Assembly (NCBI GenBank): GCA_004431415.1
Contig: QPMI01000270.1
Span: forward strand, 26,441-90,440
DNA length: 64,000 nt
Origin: Cyanophora paradoxa CCMP329
Taxonomy: Eukaryota > Plantae > Glaucophyta
Reading direction: 5' to 3'
Position numbers and translations under genes: made by a program. Shown here one piece after another: positions 22,631 to 31,305 of the stretch. Every line of letters begins with the position of its first letter. Within the stretch, counting starts at the first letter, position 1. The notes under the pieces are model-generated. The model searched no databases and was not told where the DNA came from. It was given only the letters and a program-made list of their open reading frames with translations.

Positions 22631-24035
22631 CTAGCTCGAGGCGCCCTGAAGGCGCTCCTGCGCCTCGCGGTAGGGCGGCTGCGGGGCGGCGGCGGTCAGC
22701 TGCAGGCGAGCGGGGCGGGGCGGGGCGGAGGGCGGCACGTTGATGGGGGTCTGCGCCGGGGGCCGGAAGGCGTAGGCGTCGGGGGCGGGGTAGGAGGTGT
22801 CGGGGTCGTCGGCGAAGCCGGAGAGGTCGCCGCAGGCGAGGAAGGGGACGATGACGCGGGGCGCCCCCTCGAGCGCCCCCGACGCCCCGTAGTTCTCGTC
22901 CAGCAGCGGGCTCACCAGCGTCGGCGCGTAGCCCGGGGGTGGCCGGTAGCCCCGGCACACGACGAAGGCCTCGATGGAAGAGTTGCGCGAGCTCTTCGGC
23001 TTTGAGCAAGCCACGTGCTCGAAGAAGAGCTTCAGCTGCGAGTACAGCAGCGTCACGTCCTTGCCCCGGAAGATCTGCGCCCCGCGCCCCCGCACTCAGC
23101 CCCCGTCTCCCTCCCCCGCCGCAGGCATCGGCACCTTCGCCACGAAGCTGCCGCCTGCGGGCGAGGGGCCGCCGCACCGGCGCGTCAACGGCGACGCGGT
23201 GGCGCCGGGGCGGAGGGTCCGGGCGCGGTGCGTACCGGGCCGGAGCAAAAACGATGCGATGTTGAAGGCGGCGAGGATCAGCTGCGCCTGCACGTACTCG
23301 TCCACTGTGCCCCGCCCCCTCAGCAGCCGCCCGTCGGGCCCGCGCGGAGCCGCCCCGCGCCGCCGGCGCGGTCCGCACCGTCGTGCATGCCAGTGACTGC
23401 GGGGCGGGTGAGCCGGGCGGGGCGGGGCGGGGGGAGGGGTGGGGCGGGGGGGGGGGGGGGGGGGGGGGGGGCGGGCCGTCGGGGGCGCCGTCGGAGACGA
23501 CGATGTCGGCGAGCTCGTTGTCGAAGTGGGCGAGGACGCGCTCCACCGTCTCCCGGCTCGTGATGTCCCCCTGCAGCTGGATCACCCCCTCGATCGGCGC
23601 CATCTCCTGCAGGTCCACCGCCACCACCTGCCCGCCCCGCGCCCCGTCAACCCTCGGCCCCCCGGCCCCTCGCCCCGCCGCACACCGCCCGTGGCGCGCC
23701 CCCGATCGATCGCCACCGCCGGCCCCTAGCTAGCGGCCGAATGTGCGCAGATCAGTTACCTTGCACTCTTGCTGGCCCTTGTCGCGCCGCGCCACGCGCC
23801 GCGCGATGACTTGCGACCAGGAACCTGCGAAGAGTGAGCGCGCCTTCGCTGTGACGCGCGCAAGGGGCGGCGGACCCGGTGCGGCGCAGAGGTCGACGAC
23901 GCGGTTAACCGTGCTGGGGAAGAGCCCGAACTCATCGTCGAGCTGCATCAGCTTGTAGGCGCTGCGGGCGCGGTAGCCCTCCTCCTTCGCGCGCCGGTAG
24001 TAAACATCCCGCTTGTCCTTCGAAGACTTTCCCAT
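22631..24035 (-). CDS. TRM7: tRNA (C32/G34) 2'-O-methyltransferase, TRM7/FTSJ1
   Basis: [38 protein letters not shown]|[31 protein letters not shown]|[20 protein letters not shown]. Confidence 0.95.
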
Positions 24036-24698
24036 CGCTTTCTGGGCCACTGGGCGCGCTGGAGCCTGGATACGCCGGATGCGCTAGCCGCTGGGCTGCG
24101 GCGGGCGATTTATAAACAACTGAAAGCGATCTTGAGCTCAAGTACTAGTAAAACAGTGTCGAAGCAAGCTGATCGCCTTCTGTACCCCCGCTCCCTCAGT
24201 TCCCGTACCCACATGCGGCAGTTAGAAGCAAACAAACTTGAAACTGCGTCAGCAATGTGAAGAAGAGCACAACCGGTACCTGCGCGCGTGCGCCGCGGCG
24301 CAGATCGACGCGCGCGGAGGCCATGCAGTTGCAGGGGCCGGGTTACCTGGGGTACAGCGCTAGACACCGAACACTCGCGCGGCACCGAGAACGGGCGCCG
24401 CGCAAGCCGCGGGAGCGGCGGCAATCGCTCGAGGAGGTCGCCTGGGAGCGGGCTTTCGCGGCGTCGGCCGCGGGTAGCCGGCGCCGTGCTTGCTGCTAGC
24501 GCTGAGGCCCGAGGGACGTCGACGTCCCGTCCGTGACGTGACGCGTGATTCACGACCCCAACGGCTGCGATACCCCCACCACCGACTACAAAAGCGCGGC
24601 TCGGACTCCGAACGCTCACATTTGTCAAGCACCAAGAAGCTTTCGTCGCGCTCCAGCCTCCAGGCCTCCAGCCTTCTTCGTCCTCACACAAAGTCAAC

Positions 24699-25557
24699 AT
24701 GGCCGGCCGCATCTTCTCCGCCATCGCCCGTGGTGCGTCGAGCTGTCCGCCGGGTGCTCCGACTTCGCGCGGACCGTCGGACGCTAACGGCCCCGCCTTC
24801 CCCAGACCTCAAGCAGTGCCCGGAGATCATCGCGCTTGCGGTCCCTGTCACCATCGCGTCCAGCGTCGCGATGTGAGTCTCCGTTCTGAACATGTTCTCG
24901 AAGACCCGAACTCACCTTTTCCTGGCAGTTACACCGGCGTCGCCAAGAGCGTGTTCCCCGTCAGGTGAACTCCCCTCGCTTCGCCATGCCCAAGCATACG
25001 AAGCTCGGAGGCGGCGCCCCAGCGTCCGCCGGCTTCGTCTAGATGCGCCCGTGGTTTCGCCCGCGACGGTGACGCTGACCTGCGCTGCTCGCATCAGCAA
25101 TGACGTCGCTTTCAAGAAGGAGGACATGCAGGGCGCGCTTTTCGTCAAGAACCAGAAGGTGCGGCTCCCGGGCGGACGGGCGGCCGCGTCTCGCCGGCCG
25201 CGTCCCCTCGCTCCTCGGCATCATCGGCGCAATCCTGACCTCAGGCGTCTTCTCTCGCAGTTCGAGAACGTCGCGCCGATGAGCATCTGGAGCGGCTACT
25301 CGGACCGCTTCCTGGGCTTCATGTCCGCCATCCCCGAGGTGCGACGAGCTACCTGCGAGCCGCCGCGTTTCGCCTCGGAGCCAGGCCGGCGCTGACCGGC
25401 TTCGTGCTCATCGCAGGAGTTCCACAAGGAGAACATGGAGCAGAAGCGCGCGGAACAGGCGCGCAAGCACCAGGAGAACGAGGCGCGGCTCGCCGCCGAG
25501 ATGGCCGCCTTTGAGAAGGGGCAGAAGAAGGAGACCAAGAAGGGCTGGCTCCACTAA
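24699..25557 (+). CDS. Small single-TM mitochondrial protein, B12D/NDUFA4-like
   Basis: Spliced MAGRIFSAIAR|DLKQCPEIIALAVPVTIASSVA|IYTGVAKSVFPS|NDVAFKKED...KKGWLH*. The PE(I/L)-TM-DV-aromatic-K pattern resembles B12D/NDUFA4. Confidence 0.4.
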
Positions 25558-26343
25558 GCGCGCTGCCCGAGCTCCTCGAGCCGCCCCAGCTTTCCTTTCA
25601 ACTAGCACAGTCCTCGCAATTTTCCCAGCCGCAGGGTTTCAGCCTGCAGGATCGTATAATCGCTTGCAATATATGGCTCCTCCAGTTTTAGGGTAGAGCC
25701 GGGTGTGTGTACAGTAGTTATTGATGTGCAGTGCAGATGTAGGATATTTCAGGTTCACGGTTGTAAGAATGGGAACCATTCTTTGAACTCGTGCCCGGCG
25801 GCGCGCGCCGACGGCGGCTGCGCCTATAGCTATAGCTATGCCCAGCTATCCGGTAGCTTCGCCACTGGGCCGCGGCACTTTGTGCATGCTTTCCAACGTC
25901 AACTACTGTGTACTATGGCATGCGCATGCACTCTGCCAGCGCTAGCGCGCGGCATATGCATCGAAATCGGCATCGCGTCGAATCCGCCGTCGATAGCGCG
26001 GCCGCGGCGGCCGCGGCGCGCGTGCGCGCGTCAAAACGTCGCCGAACGCGCATATGCATGCGCGCCAGTGATCATGAGACGGATCCGGACCTGTGGGGGG
26101 CCCAGGGGGGAGGAGGCCAGGGGGGATAGCGATTCAGTTGCAGCAGCCGCTGATTCAAGTAACCGCCGCACCTAGTTCGCCTGCACAGCGCGAGCGAGCT
26201 TCTCTCGAGAGAGCGCGGCGGGGGTGCAGAGCCGTGAAGTCGGAGGGCGAGCACGCGAAGACAACGCGCACGCCCCAAGCCCCCCGACTGGGTGGCGCTA
26301 CGCATCTCCGACTGCCCACGCACTCGGCAGAGAAGTGAAGCAT

Positions 26344-26391
26344 CAGCGGCGCGGAGGCGCCGCAATGCAGCGGCGCGGAGGCGCGGCAATG
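26344..26391. repeat. Two tandem 24-bp direct repeats upstream of the LOV-ABCG gene
   Basis: CAGCGGCGCGGAGGCGCCGCAATG and CAGCGGCGCGGAGGCGCGGCAATG (1 mismatch). Confidence 0.8.
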
Positions 26392-26533
26392 CGCCAAGGC
26401 GACCGCGCAGTCGCGCTGAGCGATGTAACAATGGCACAAAAAGCAGATCCAGGAGCAGCCACGCCTGCGTTCCTCGAATCGGTGCGCATGCACGTGCGAT
26501 GGAACGACCGCAAGGCTACTAGTACTGACAATC

Positions 26534-29500
26534 ATGAGCGCCCAGAACTTTCTGTTGAATGCTCTCAAGCGGGTCCAAGCTAGCTTTGTTCTCGCAGACC
26601 CCTCGCAGGTGCTCGCCTGTTCTCGCCCCCCGCGCGCCAGCAGTCCCCAATTTGACCGCATCGCCAGCCCGACACGCCGATCGTCTTCGCGAGCGCGGGC
26701 TTCTACAAGCTTACGGTACGCCGCGCCCTGCTGAAAGCGAGGCCCCCATGACCGGTCCGCCGCGCAGGGCTATGCGCCGCACGAAGTGCCCCCCTCGCTC
26801 CCGCCGGCGCGGCTCGTCTCACGGCGGGGCCAGGTCATCGGGCGGAACTGCCGGTTCCTGCAGGGGCGGGACACGTCGCCGGAGGACGTGGAGGCGATCC
26901 GCGAGGCGATCCGCGCGGGCACGGAGGTGCACGTGGGCGGCCCTCGTCCCCCCCGGGGCGGCGCGCGGGGGCCGAGCGTGGCGGGCGCGGCAGGTGTCGC
27001 TGCGGCTGACGAACTACCGGAAGGACGGGACGCGGTTCAGCAACCTGTTCTACCTGGCGCCGCTGCACGACGGGGCCGGCAATCTCAAGTTCTTCATCGG
27101 CGTGCAGACGGACGTCTCCGAGGAGGGCCCCGAGGAGCCCCGCCTCAGCGAGGACGCACCGCTCATCCCCCGCCCCGAGCCCCACCGCGTCCGCCCGCCC
27201 CGCCCCGCCCCCGCCCCGCCCCCATCCCGCCCCGACCCCGCGCAGGCGGCGCACGTGCACGTTGTCCGCGTCTCCAACACGAGCGGCGCCTCCGCTCCCG
27301 GCACGCCCCCGGAGCTCGCGCTGCCCTCAAAGCCCGGGTCCGCGGGGCGCCGGGGCGGGGTGTTGGTGGGCGGGGCGTGGGAGCTGAGGCGGGGGGCAGG
27401 CGGGTGAGCCTGCCGATGCTGCTGCAGTTCGAGAACGTGAGCTACGCTGTGATGGCGGTGCCGCCGGGGCCCCAGGGGAAGCCGTCGTTCTGGAAGGCCT
27501 GGCTCCCGGGCTTCCTCCTCCCCAAGTCCGCCGGCAAGCCCAAGGAGCGCGTCCTCCTCAAGGGCATCTCGGGGACGGTCGCGCCGAGCGAGCTGCTCGC
27601 CGGTGCCCCCCCCGCGCCGGCCGCCCGGCGCCCGGGGCTGACGCCGGGCGGGGCGGGGGGCAGTCATGGGCCCCTCGGGGGGCGGCAAGACCACCTTGTT
27701 GAACCTCCTCGCCGGGCGCCTGCAGGGCAAGGTGCGCCGGCGGCGGCGGGGGCGGGGCCGGGGGGTCGGCGAGGGGCGCCGCGGCAGATGACGACGGGGT
27801 CGGTGCTCTTCAACGGGCGCCCGCGCACCTCCGACCTCAAGCGCCGCATCGGCTACGTCCTCCAGGCCCGCCCTCGCCCCGGGCCCGCGCCCCCGCCCCG
27901 CACCGAGCCGCCCCGTCGCAGGACGACGTTTTCTTCGCGAACCTGACGGTCCAGGAAACGGTGCGGCCCCTCACTGTGCGCCGCCCGCCGGCTGTGCCCT
28001 CACCCGCCGGCCCCACACGTGACCCCAGCTGGAGTTTACGGGTGCGCTCCCCGGGGGTCGTCGCGCTCGGGCGAGTGGGCCTGAGGCGGGGCGCAGCGCT
28101 TCTGCGGCTGCCGCGGACGCTGACGAAGCAGGCGAAGCGCGCGCGCGTGCAGGAGGCGAGCGGGGCGGGGGCGCCGGGATGGGGGGCGGGTGGTGAGGCG
28201 GGGCGGGGCAGGTGATGGGCGCGCTGGGCCTGCTGAAGTGCGCGCACACGATCATCGGGAACGCCTTCATGCGCGGCGTCTCCGGCGGCGAGCGCAAGCG
28301 CGTCAACATCGCGTGCGCCGCGGGCCCCCGGGGGCGCTGGCGGGGGGCTGGGGCGAGGGGGCGGGGCGGGGCGGCAGGTGCGAGATGCTGGTGGACCCGA
28401 GCCTGCTCCTCCTCGACGAGGTGCCCGCCCCCCCCGCGCTCGGGGTGCCGGCCGGGCGGGGGGCGAGGGGCGCCGCAGCCGACCTCGGGCCTCGACTCGA
28501 GCACCGCCCTCCAGCTCATGTACACCCTCCGCGTGCGCCCCCAGCGCCCCGCCTCGACCCCCCGGCCCCGATCTCACCCCCGCCCCAGAAACTCTGCACC
28601 GAGGGCCGCACCGTCGTCGCCACGGCGCGCCCCGCCGGCCGCGGGTGTGGGCGGGGGCGCTGAGGGCGGGGGCGCAGCTGCACCAGCCGAGCTCGCAGAT
28701 GTTCGAGCTGTACGATAAGCTGCTGCTGGTGGCGGACGGGCAGACGGCCTTCTACGGCAAGGCCGCCGACGCCGTCAAGTACTTCGCCGCTGTCGGCTTC
28801 CCCTGCCCCGTGCCCGGCCCCCCCGCCCCCTCCCCCCGCCCCCCCACCCCACACCGACCTTGCCCGGGCTGCGAGCAGCCCACGTATAACCCAGCCGACT
28901 TTTTGGTGAGCGCGCCGGGCGCCGGGCGGGCCGCTGTGGGCGACGCGGGGGGGGCAGCTGGGCCTGCTGGTGCCGCAGAGCGTGGAGCTGGAGGGCCCGC
29001 GGCCGGCCGGGCTCCCCGCGGGGGACGCCAAGGCCGAGGTCCTCAGGGCCTGGGAGCAGCGCCACCACCACGCCGCCTCCCCGCACCCCGAGCACCCCCA
29101 CCGCCCCGACCCCGCCGACGCCCCCGTGCCGCCCCGCGCCCCTGCGCGCCCCGGCGCGAGGGTGACGTGGGGCGGGGCGCAGGGGCGGCGGGGCGCGAAG
29201 TTCCCTGTGTCGTGGGTGGAGCAGTTCGGGGTGCTGACGAGGCGGGCGCTGCGGCAGAAGCGGGGGGACTCGCTCTCGCAGCTCTCGCTCGTGCAGGTCC
29301 TCCTCCTCGCCCTCCTCTGCGGCGTCCTCTGGTTCCGCATGCCCTTCGCCGAGTCCCGCCTCGAGAACCGCACCGGCCTCATCTTCTTCAGCTGCGTCTT
29401 CTGGGTCCGCCCCGCCCCCGCCCTCACCCCGCCCCACGTCTCACCGGCCCTCACCCTGCCCCGCCCCAGGGCTTCTTCCCCCTCTACAGTGCGCCGGCGG

Positions 29501-30659
29501 CGCGCGGGGCGGGGCCGGGGCTCACCCTCGCGCGCAGACGCCCTCTCGGCGTTCCCGCCGGAGCGCGGCGTGCTCATGCGCGAGCGGGCCTCGGGGGCCT
29601 ACTACCTCTCCAGGTGCCCCACCGCCCCCGCCCCTCCCGCTCGCCCCCGCGCTCACGCGCGGCAGCTACTTCATGGCGAAGACCACTTCAGAGATACCCC
29701 TCGGTCCGCACCGCCCCGCCCCGGCGAGGGCCCCACTCCAGGGGGCCTGCTAAGGGCCGCGCAGAGTGCGTCTTTCCGACGCTGTTCGCCGTGATCGTGT
29801 ACTGGATGTCGGGCCTGCGGAACGACGGCGGGGCCTTCATCGTCTTCCTTCTAATCCTCGGTATCCGCCCCGTACTATACATTGCTTCACTAAGCCTTCA
29901 TCGCCTCCCTCGGCATTCACGTCATTATGCCAGTTCTTTCGAGCCTTGTCGCACAGTCGGTGGGCCTCTTCATCTCGACGGCGGTGCCGAACTTGTGCGC
30001 GGGGCGCGTGCTCGAGCTCGGGACGCCGGGGGCTGAGGCCCTCGCGCAGCAAGAAGGCCCTCGTCGTCGCCTCCCTCTTCATGCTCGGTGCAGATGACCC
30101 GGATGCGCTGCTCTGCCGCCTCGCGCGTCGTTCCCGACGCCCCTTCCCGCAGCGAGCATGCTCGTCGGCGGCTTCTACGTCTCCAACGAGGCCCTGTCCG
30201 CCGCCGGCCCCGCCCCCGCGCCGCCCCGCGCCGCCCCCGTGACCGGCGGCGCAGGCCGATCTGGATCCGCTGGATCCGCTACGTGTCCTTCGTCAAGTAT
30301 TCCTTCGAGTGCGCGGGGCCGCCGGGGGGGCGTCTGGGGGAGGGCCGAGGTGGGGCGGCGCGGGGGCGCAGGGCGATGCTGCTGAACGAGTTCAGCGGGG
30401 GCAACCACAGCTGCGACGTGGTGCCCTCCAAGTACGCCGCCTGCCTCGCCTCCAACTACACCGCCGGCATCCCCGTCCCCGACATCCTCGCCATGCTCGG
30501 CACCGAGAACTCCATGGGTCCCCTGCCGCCGCAGCGCCAGCCCCTCCCCTACTTGCTGACTCTCCCTGTGCCGCCGCGGCAGGCCTCAATGTCGGCTCCC
30601 TCGTCATCATGCTATTTGGCTTCCGCTTTCTTTCCTACCTCTGCCTCCGCTACAATTAA
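26534..30659 (+). CDS. LOV-domain (blue-light flavin sensor) fused to an ABCG half-transporter (LOV-NBD-TMD)
   Basis: Exons 26534-26608, 26668-26715, 26768-26785, 26834-26926 and 26994-27188 encode a full LOV domain with GRNCRFLQ. Exons 27246-27337 and 27400 onward lead in frame into an ABCG NBD: Walker A GPSGGGKTT, Q-loop GYVLQDD, signature VSGGERKR, Walker B LLLLDEPTSGLD, H-loop TLHQPS, NPADF. A six-helix ABCG TMD ends FRFLSYLCLRYN*. Confidence 0.9.
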
Positions 30660-31305
30660 CCCCTACAATCAGCCGCCCCCCAGCGCCTCCCCCCTGTTTA
30701 TTTACAAGATTCTACTTATAATTACGTATTGAACCGCACGTGATAGAGCATGTAGCGACCGGGCGGCAGCAACGGTAGCTTATCATGACTCAGTGAACCA
30801 GCCGTTGAGCTGCAGCCAGCTCAGCGGCTGCAGCTGCAGCTGCAGCTGCGCGTGCATGCAGGCCTAGCTATAGGTGGCCTAGGCCTGGCCATGGCCATGG
30901 CAAGCCGCCCGGCCCCGGGCCCTGCGGGGAGCTCGCAGTAATTCTCTGCGCGCATGCGCAGTGCTATAGCGCTATACCTAGCTAGCCTGTAGCGCTTCTA
31001 GGCTTGTGGCCTCGAGCTCCAGCCCCCCCCCCCCCCCCCACATTTGGCCGGGTACAGACGCGATGTCCAGCTCAACCCCCATCAAGCCTGAAGTACTAGC
31101 AGGATGAGCAGCTCCTGTAGATAACTATGTCTATAGCTTGAAAGAGGCGGGCAGCGCCTGGCGCTACACACGCAGACTTCGAAGGAATGGACCTGCCGGA
31201 CAACCTCAGGCTCGCGGATAACGCGGCGTTCGCGCAAATACTCGAAGATGAAGGTTCGCGAGACGCGGATGCGCGCGCTCACTCTGCGGCTTTCGAACGC
31301 CGGTC

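Follow-up and report, generated by a model that had tools for sequence, protein, structure and literature searches.

A spliced LOV-ABCG fusion gene in Cyanophora paradoxa, a candidate light-responsive half-transporter with relatives across eukaryote supergroups

A 64-kb window of the glaucophyte Cyanophora paradoxa CCMP329 (contig QPMI01000270.1, positions 26,441 to 90,440, forward strand), composed of GC-rich eukaryotic DNA dense in introns, contains a genuine spliced gene in which one mRNA and one open reading frame (ORF) join a complete LOV domain to an ABCG transporter. By window we mean this whole stretch of 64,000 nucleotides, and coordinates count from its first letter. The product is EukProt protein EP00741_Cyanophora_paradoxa_P007497 (tig00001130_g7252.t1; 816 amino acids, starting at ATG 26431), whose numbering is used for all residues; our first searches used exons and genomic ORFs and later ones the database's own 816-residue protein (P0001). 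On balance we somewhat favor the view that the gene product is an ABCG half-transporter responsive to blue light, with a LOV domain tethered to each subunit. The parts of the gene, including the nucleotide-binding domain (NBD) and the transmembrane domain (TMD) of the transporter, are as follows.

26123..30732, plus strand: transcribed span of 31 exons and 30 introns (RNA-type contigs, namely record 1 of X1 and record 13 of X3; match in model length)
26365..26481, plus strand: coding exon 1, with ATGs 26365, 26389 and 26431 (model and public 816-residue protein; stop at 26173)
26423..26428, plus strand: minimal start-stop upstream ORF, two bases 5' of ATG 26431 (sequence)
26482..26545, plus strand: intron 1, which holds ATG 26534 (290 nt skipped in two RNA contigs; GT..AG, phase 0)
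26546..27113, plus strand: LOV domain, residues 18-131 of 816, exons 2-6 (PAS_9, PDB matches, AlphaFold)
26849-26851 and 27105-27107, plus strand: codons of the photoactive Cys and the signaling Gln, respectively (sequence)
27114..27424, plus strand: Pro-rich disordered linker of ~62 amino acids, spanning introns 27189-27245 and 27338-27399 (predicted local distance difference test [pLDDT], homolog comparison, RNA bridging)
27425..28905, plus strand: ABCG NBD (ABC_tran, E 1e-30; Walker A at 27669-27692, other motifs intact)
29213..30659, plus strand: ABCG TMD, a connecting helix and six transmembrane helices, with the stop codon at 30657-30659 (ABC2_membrane, E 1e-51; model; Foldseek)

The fusion is taken as genuine because spliced RNA-type contigs from two studies bridge the LOV and NBD exons. 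The runs compared with positions 25900-31000 were three of RNA type (X1, X3 and X8 included) and one that looked genomic (X16), none of them recorded as RNA. Record 13 of X3 (study P2) is a single contig of 2,814 nt spanning 26141-30732, and record 1 of X1 (study P1) begins at 26123 and reaches the first NBD exon; both skip 119 nt between 27185 and 27399, the sum of the two linker introns (57 + 62). These two joints were derived from the record coordinates of X1 and X3, not from the joint table. Each of the three RNA-type runs has the 14 other GT/GC-AG joints that the table lists, and the DNA contigs of X16 have none of them. A coordinate-only model of 31 exons and 30 introns gives a spliced length of 2,814 nt for 26141-30732, exactly that of the X3 contig, agrees with all positions checked in the records (eight in X3, three in X1) and yields one ORF of 838 codons with no internal stop. 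The introns, of which 27 are GT-AG and three GC-AG (GC donors at 27866, 28156 and 28625), have a mean length of 59 nt. Micro-exons of 13 nt (28029-28041), 18 nt (26768-26785) and 19 nt (29470-29488) occur among the exons, the first and last of them directly visible in RNA joints.

Rare variants are lost from assembled contigs, so isoforms with LOV alone or ABCG alone may exist at a minor level, and run X8 is broken into fragments at the junction. These points speak for an annotation artefact, in which separate LOV and ABCG genes were joined by prediction or by rare read-through, but we give it a very slim chance: contigs from two studies are spliced over the junction, one of them full length and just as the model predicts, and on this ground we rejected separate genes or read-through.

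An earlier note on this DNA, made from the letters alone, had placed the LOV exons, both linker introns and the ABCG motifs where we find them, and had correctly read the frame through the LOV-to-NBD junction without a stop. Its start codon, ATG 26534, has to be abandoned. X1 and X3 skip 290 nt between 26480 and 26992, where the note's model predicted 226 nt, and the difference of 64 nt is the intron 26482-26545, which contains that ATG. Translation therefore starts upstream, at 26431 or 26365, and the LOV domain is unaffected. Three in-frame ATGs (26365, 26389 and 26431) follow the in-frame stop at 26173, and ATG 26431, where the public model begins, has the best context of the three. The two farther upstream may be by-products of a 24-nt tandem duplication at 26344-26391, whose copies are 96% identical and each end in one of these ATGs. 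The upstream ORF at 26423-26428 could tune translation.

LOV domains respond to blue light by forming a flavin mononucleotide (FMN)-cysteinyl adduct, a change that is relayed through a Gln to the beta-sheet and A'-alpha surface. The N-terminal domain of the Cyanophora protein matches Pfam PAS_9 (residues 38-134, E 6e-20) and has, within its PAS fold, the GXNCRFLQ motif with the adduct-forming Cys. A residue check bears out the claim that this LOV domain is complete, as Asn65, Cys66, Arg67, Gln70, Asn98, Asn108 and the signaling Gln129, the flavin and photocycle residues, are all kept. Established LOV chemistry makes it very probable that the domain holds FMN and that blue light drives formation of the Cys66 adduct. 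The closest LOV structures in the PDB are aureochrome domains (E 4e-37), those of Phaeodactylum and Vaucheria, and the match includes the N-terminal A'-alpha segment that they have in common with Cyanophora. The protein is not itself an aureochrome, since it has no bZIP and its LOV domain begins at residue 18; in aureochromes the bZIP effector is N-terminal to LOV, whereas here the effector is a C-terminal transporter and no J-alpha helix is predicted. Nor is it a phototropin, having a single LOV domain that branches apart from the supported clades of LOV1 and LOV2, and no AGC kinase. An AlphaFold2 monomer model of the 816-residue protein (pLDDT 87.8; predicted template modeling score 0.76) has an A'-alpha helix at residues 18-25, a folded LOV domain up to residue 131 (pLDDT about 95), disorder at 135-184 (pLDDT < 50) and then a standard ABCG fold, with no J-alpha helix between LOV and NBD. 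In homologs the linker is 48-101 amino acids long and unconserved in sequence.

ABCG half-transporters function as dimers and carry one NBD and one TMD in reverse order, the NBD first. The Cyanophora protein has this arrangement, with Pfam matches to ABC_tran at 240-391 (E 1e-30) and to ABC2_membrane_7 and ABC2_membrane at 540-750 (E 1e-51 for the latter). The reading of an intact NBD and full TMD is upheld by motif check, Pfam and model: Walker A, Q-loop, signature, Walker B with its catalytic Glu, D-loop, H-loop and NPADF are all present. The protein probably acts as a dimer that exports some lipid-like or small amphipathic molecule. Its closest solved transporter by sequence is the homodimeric AtABCG25 (PDB, E 6e-132), which is also the best Foldseek match (TM-score by target 0.87). 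It belongs to the plant half-size ABCG9/14/21/22/25/26 group, which lies in the same subfamily and has no LOV domain. Among these, AtABCG25 exports abscisic acid (ABA), AtABCG14 cytokinin and AtABCG9 steryl glucosides (PMC10811370). Three AtABCG25 residues linked to ABA export, I445, V449 and T552 (PMC10811370), align with V, F and S in the Cyanophora protein. Because these pocket residues differ, we rejected an identity as ABA exporter and do not regard the protein as an orthologue of AtABCG25 in function. It also stands outside the angiosperm ABCG25 clade; its branch leaves from the base of the wider subfamily, where the tree is unresolved.

The same domain order occurs in six further lineages, seven with Cyanophora, found by a whole-protein search and a profile search that were both screened for PAS/LOV and ABCG domains. 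On this evidence, PAS/LOV-ABCG fusions form a family across eukaryote supergroups, with members in Archaeplastida, Amoebozoa and Provora. The photoactive Cys is kept in three of the seven: besides Cyanophora, the LOV domain is intact in Mesostigma viride (a JGI gene model) and in TSA GECG01000057.1, which is probably from the bicosoecid Halocafeteria seosinensis. It is lost in the other four. In Vermistella antarctica (P0280), the Cys has become Leu and both Gln His while the two Asn are conserved, so that this amoeba has a naturally Cys-less LOV; in Chlorokybus atmophyticus (a JGI gene model), Ancoracysta twista and Balamuthia mandrillaris the PAS is degenerate. The fusion thus appears photoactive in three lineages and degenerate in four. 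Three of the seven come from complete transcriptome ORFs, and in Balamuthia the first intron follows residue 458, so that PAS and NBD share one exon; such independent homologs further speak against an artefact of annotation. No intron positions are shared between Cyanophora and Balamuthia (0 of 4), a comparison that we consider uninformative.

Wider surveys returned no more fusions. The best 120 matches to the LOV region (proteins of 449-1428 amino acids), swamped by phototropins, included no further ABC fusion. In a metagenome scan, none of 80 ABC loci (L053 left out) had a LOV or PAS within 1.5 kb, and of 80 LOV loci in prokaryotic genomes none had an ABC ATPase, either in fusion or as a neighbor. 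The ESM Atlas, at clusters of at least 50 members, gave plain ABCG clusters only. Putative PAS remnants in P0162 and P0201 had hhalign probabilities of 3% and 0.2% and were not counted; in P0162 (L001), a 5'-truncated, metatranscriptome-like ABCG, residues 16-33 resemble a PAS end, below significance. The database also holds proteins of 1,611-4,197 amino acids with 6-10 tandem LOV-like domains (P0122, P0126 and P0205).

Since four of the seven fusions keep the domain without its Cys, the PAS/LOV domain probably has an additional, light-independent role. A stronger form of this idea is that the domain is mainly a light-independent module (structural, trafficking, redox or ligand sensing) and that the photochemistry in Cyanophora is incidental or modulatory. 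Vermistella, Chlorokybus, Ancoracysta and Balamuthia retain the PAS fold with Cys66 and most flavin contacts lost, heterotrophs have the fusion, and the ESM Atlas look-alikes of the Ancoracysta PAS include KCNH PAS clusters, which is a lead only. The PAS of KCNH/EAG channels and the FHA domain of the ABC exporter Rv1747 are N-terminal regulatory modules tethered to a membrane transport protein; they are not light sensors and offer an analogy only. We nevertheless think the stronger form unlikely, as a full LOV signature in three deeply diverged lineages implies selection on photochemistry there.

The history of the fusion was traced in quick tree runs (LG+G4 or FastTree) made with subsets of the matches, and some of the rows that lack LOV may be gene calls cut short at the 5' end. 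All seven fusions fall, in the transporter tree, in one ABCG subfamily, apart from White/ABCG2/PDR-type halves (Shimodaira-Hasegawa-like approximate likelihood ratio test 99). Within it, an amoebozoan group (support 96) contains Vermistella and Balamuthia, and a green group (99) contains Mesostigma, Chlorokybus, chlorophytes and land-plant ABCG9/14/21/22/25-type proteins. Most members of the subfamily, including all the chlorophyte and land-plant ones sampled, have no LOV domain. That distribution would suit a neutral passenger fusion, with the LOV domain idle for the transporter or clipped off in the linker, but seven distant lineages have the domain at one and the same position, whether kept or gained again and again, and the LOV itself is intact; we hold a mere passenger to be highly improbable.

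The LOV tree, built from a set free of aureochrome, WC-1 and ZTL domains, places the fused domains near each other, with 3 changes as against 6.8 when labels are shuffled; in the same set the best match of Mesostigma is the Cyanophora LOV and that of Chlorokybus is Mesostigma. Monophyly of the fused LOV/PAS domains is not rejected by the approximately unbiased test (p-AU 0.48; 0.395 without three long branches). With moderate confidence, we prefer one old fusion in a pan-eukaryotic ABCG subfamily, lost many times, to several gains. Counted on the other side are an ABC tree that rejects the fusions as an exclusive clade (p-AU 3e-48) and requires at least six gains or losses, and a LOV tree of few columns in which no supported branch unites the fused domains. 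Several independent fusions onto the same subfamily are therefore a possible alternative, and the searches favored ABCGs near the query, so that a fusion elsewhere among the ABCG subfamilies may have escaped them.

How light might act on the Cyanophora transporter can be outlined. Each subunit would carry a cytosolic LOV domain on a flexible tether of ~60 residues. Blue light would form the FMN-Cys66 adduct, and the signal would pass via Gln129 to the beta-sheet and A'-alpha surface, altering contacts at the cytosolic face of the dimer through an aureochrome-like A'-alpha helix and beta-sheet surface. Aureochrome LOV domains dimerize on light, and serve as the model here; in one of the two states, nearby LOV domains on tethers could associate with each other or dock onto the NBDs. 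We lean, by a little more than evens, toward a lit state in which LOV-LOV or LOV-NBD contacts shift and thereby adjust ATPase turnover, the state of the dimer or its residence in the membrane. Because the NBDs of AtABCG25 remain in contact even without nucleotide (PMC10811370), light would more likely tune an existing dimer than assemble one. Likewise, the lack of a J-alpha helix and the long, variable, disordered linker make tethered or partner-based regulation more likely than a rigid allosteric lever in the model.

Several observations weigh against light regulation of transport. Loss of the Cys in four of seven fusions indicates that light is not essential to family function. Fusion-specific docking residues on the transporter number 8 columns against a control mean of 7.7, which is chance level, and the disordered linker of the monomer model cannot show a LOV contact. 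In the literature we found no photochemistry, ATPase, transport or localization data for a LOV-ABCG protein. The long, unconserved, disordered linker and the lack of a docking signature on the NBD would also fit a transporter that is an anchor, from which a photoactive LOV domain signals outward, recruiting or releasing partners, such as other LOV proteins of Cyanophora, at the membrane while transport proceeds without light regulation. This we regard as improbable: the transporter motifs are fully intact, the domain order is identical in seven lineages, and LOV proteins of the one-component type, where characterized, normally have the domain fused to LOV as the effector under control.

Usual LOV effectors are kinases, transcription factors or enzymes, and we found no report in the literature in which a photoreceptor domain gates the primary active ABC transporter that carries it. 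The nearest functional precedent is Arabidopsis phot1, a LOV kinase that inhibits the ABC transporter ABCB19 in trans (PMC3110179). There, too, a LOV photoreceptor controls ABC efflux, but through two proteins, a phosphorylation link and a different ABC subfamily; the case shows that such control exists, not that the Cyanophora fusion uses it. The architecture itself has been listed. Table S1 of Manisha, Singh and Kateriya (bioRxiv 10.1101/2025.06.20.660589) has, as one of 13 entries, a "LOV-ABC transporter G-25" from mining of PhycoCosm/NCBI algae databases, with intact LOV residues and the same architecture name as the Cyanophora protein; it may be that protein or the one from Mesostigma. 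The available preprint text names a "LOV-ABC transporter" once and contains no transcript check, homolog survey, mechanism or experiment. It was the sole paper found with that term, in a search to which the LOV survey of Glantz et al. 2016 was external. The Cyanophora genome paper and a 2025 algal photoreceptor review turned up no passage on LOV-ABC, and the gene id g7252 was not found in the Price 2019 supplements.

With this table entry and a public gene model that carries the same Pfam domains, the earlier note's "new photoreceptor architecture" is not supported as worded. Its remark that it knew of no characterized LOV-ABC transporter agrees with our finding no functional characterization in the literature. 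As a whole, its interpretation holds for the single transcript and ORF, the LOV domain and the ABCG transporter, fails on the novelty of the architecture, and missed the family across supergroups. None of the papers found gives the proof from transcripts, the revised start codon, the distribution over supergroups or the link to the ABCG25/14 subfamily.

If light regulation is true, a natural LOV-ABCG protein would add a class of LOV effector and a template for light-switchable export. If the LOV-bearing form is ancestral, loss of the sensor would have led to the land-plant exporters of ABA, cytokinin and pollen-coat lipids. The family also bears on the role that the forerunner of the hormone exporters of plants had in early algae. 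That both hold, with a directly LOV-switched single-chain ABC exporter and a LOV form ancestral to the subfamily of plant exporters, is a tentative and rather doubtful proposition. The family provides its own comparison, with three photoactive-looking versions, four Cys-less ones and LOV-less plant relatives of solved structure, and regulation of an ABCG transporter by a sensor is therefore directly testable.

The genes flanking LOV-ABCG appear unrelated to it. By eye, a gene resembling TRM7/FtsJ-type RNA 2'-O-methyltransferases lies at 22700-24050 on the minus strand, and a small spliced gene just upstream, at 24699-25557 on the plus strand, possibly encodes an NDUFA4/MLRQ-like mitochondrial protein.

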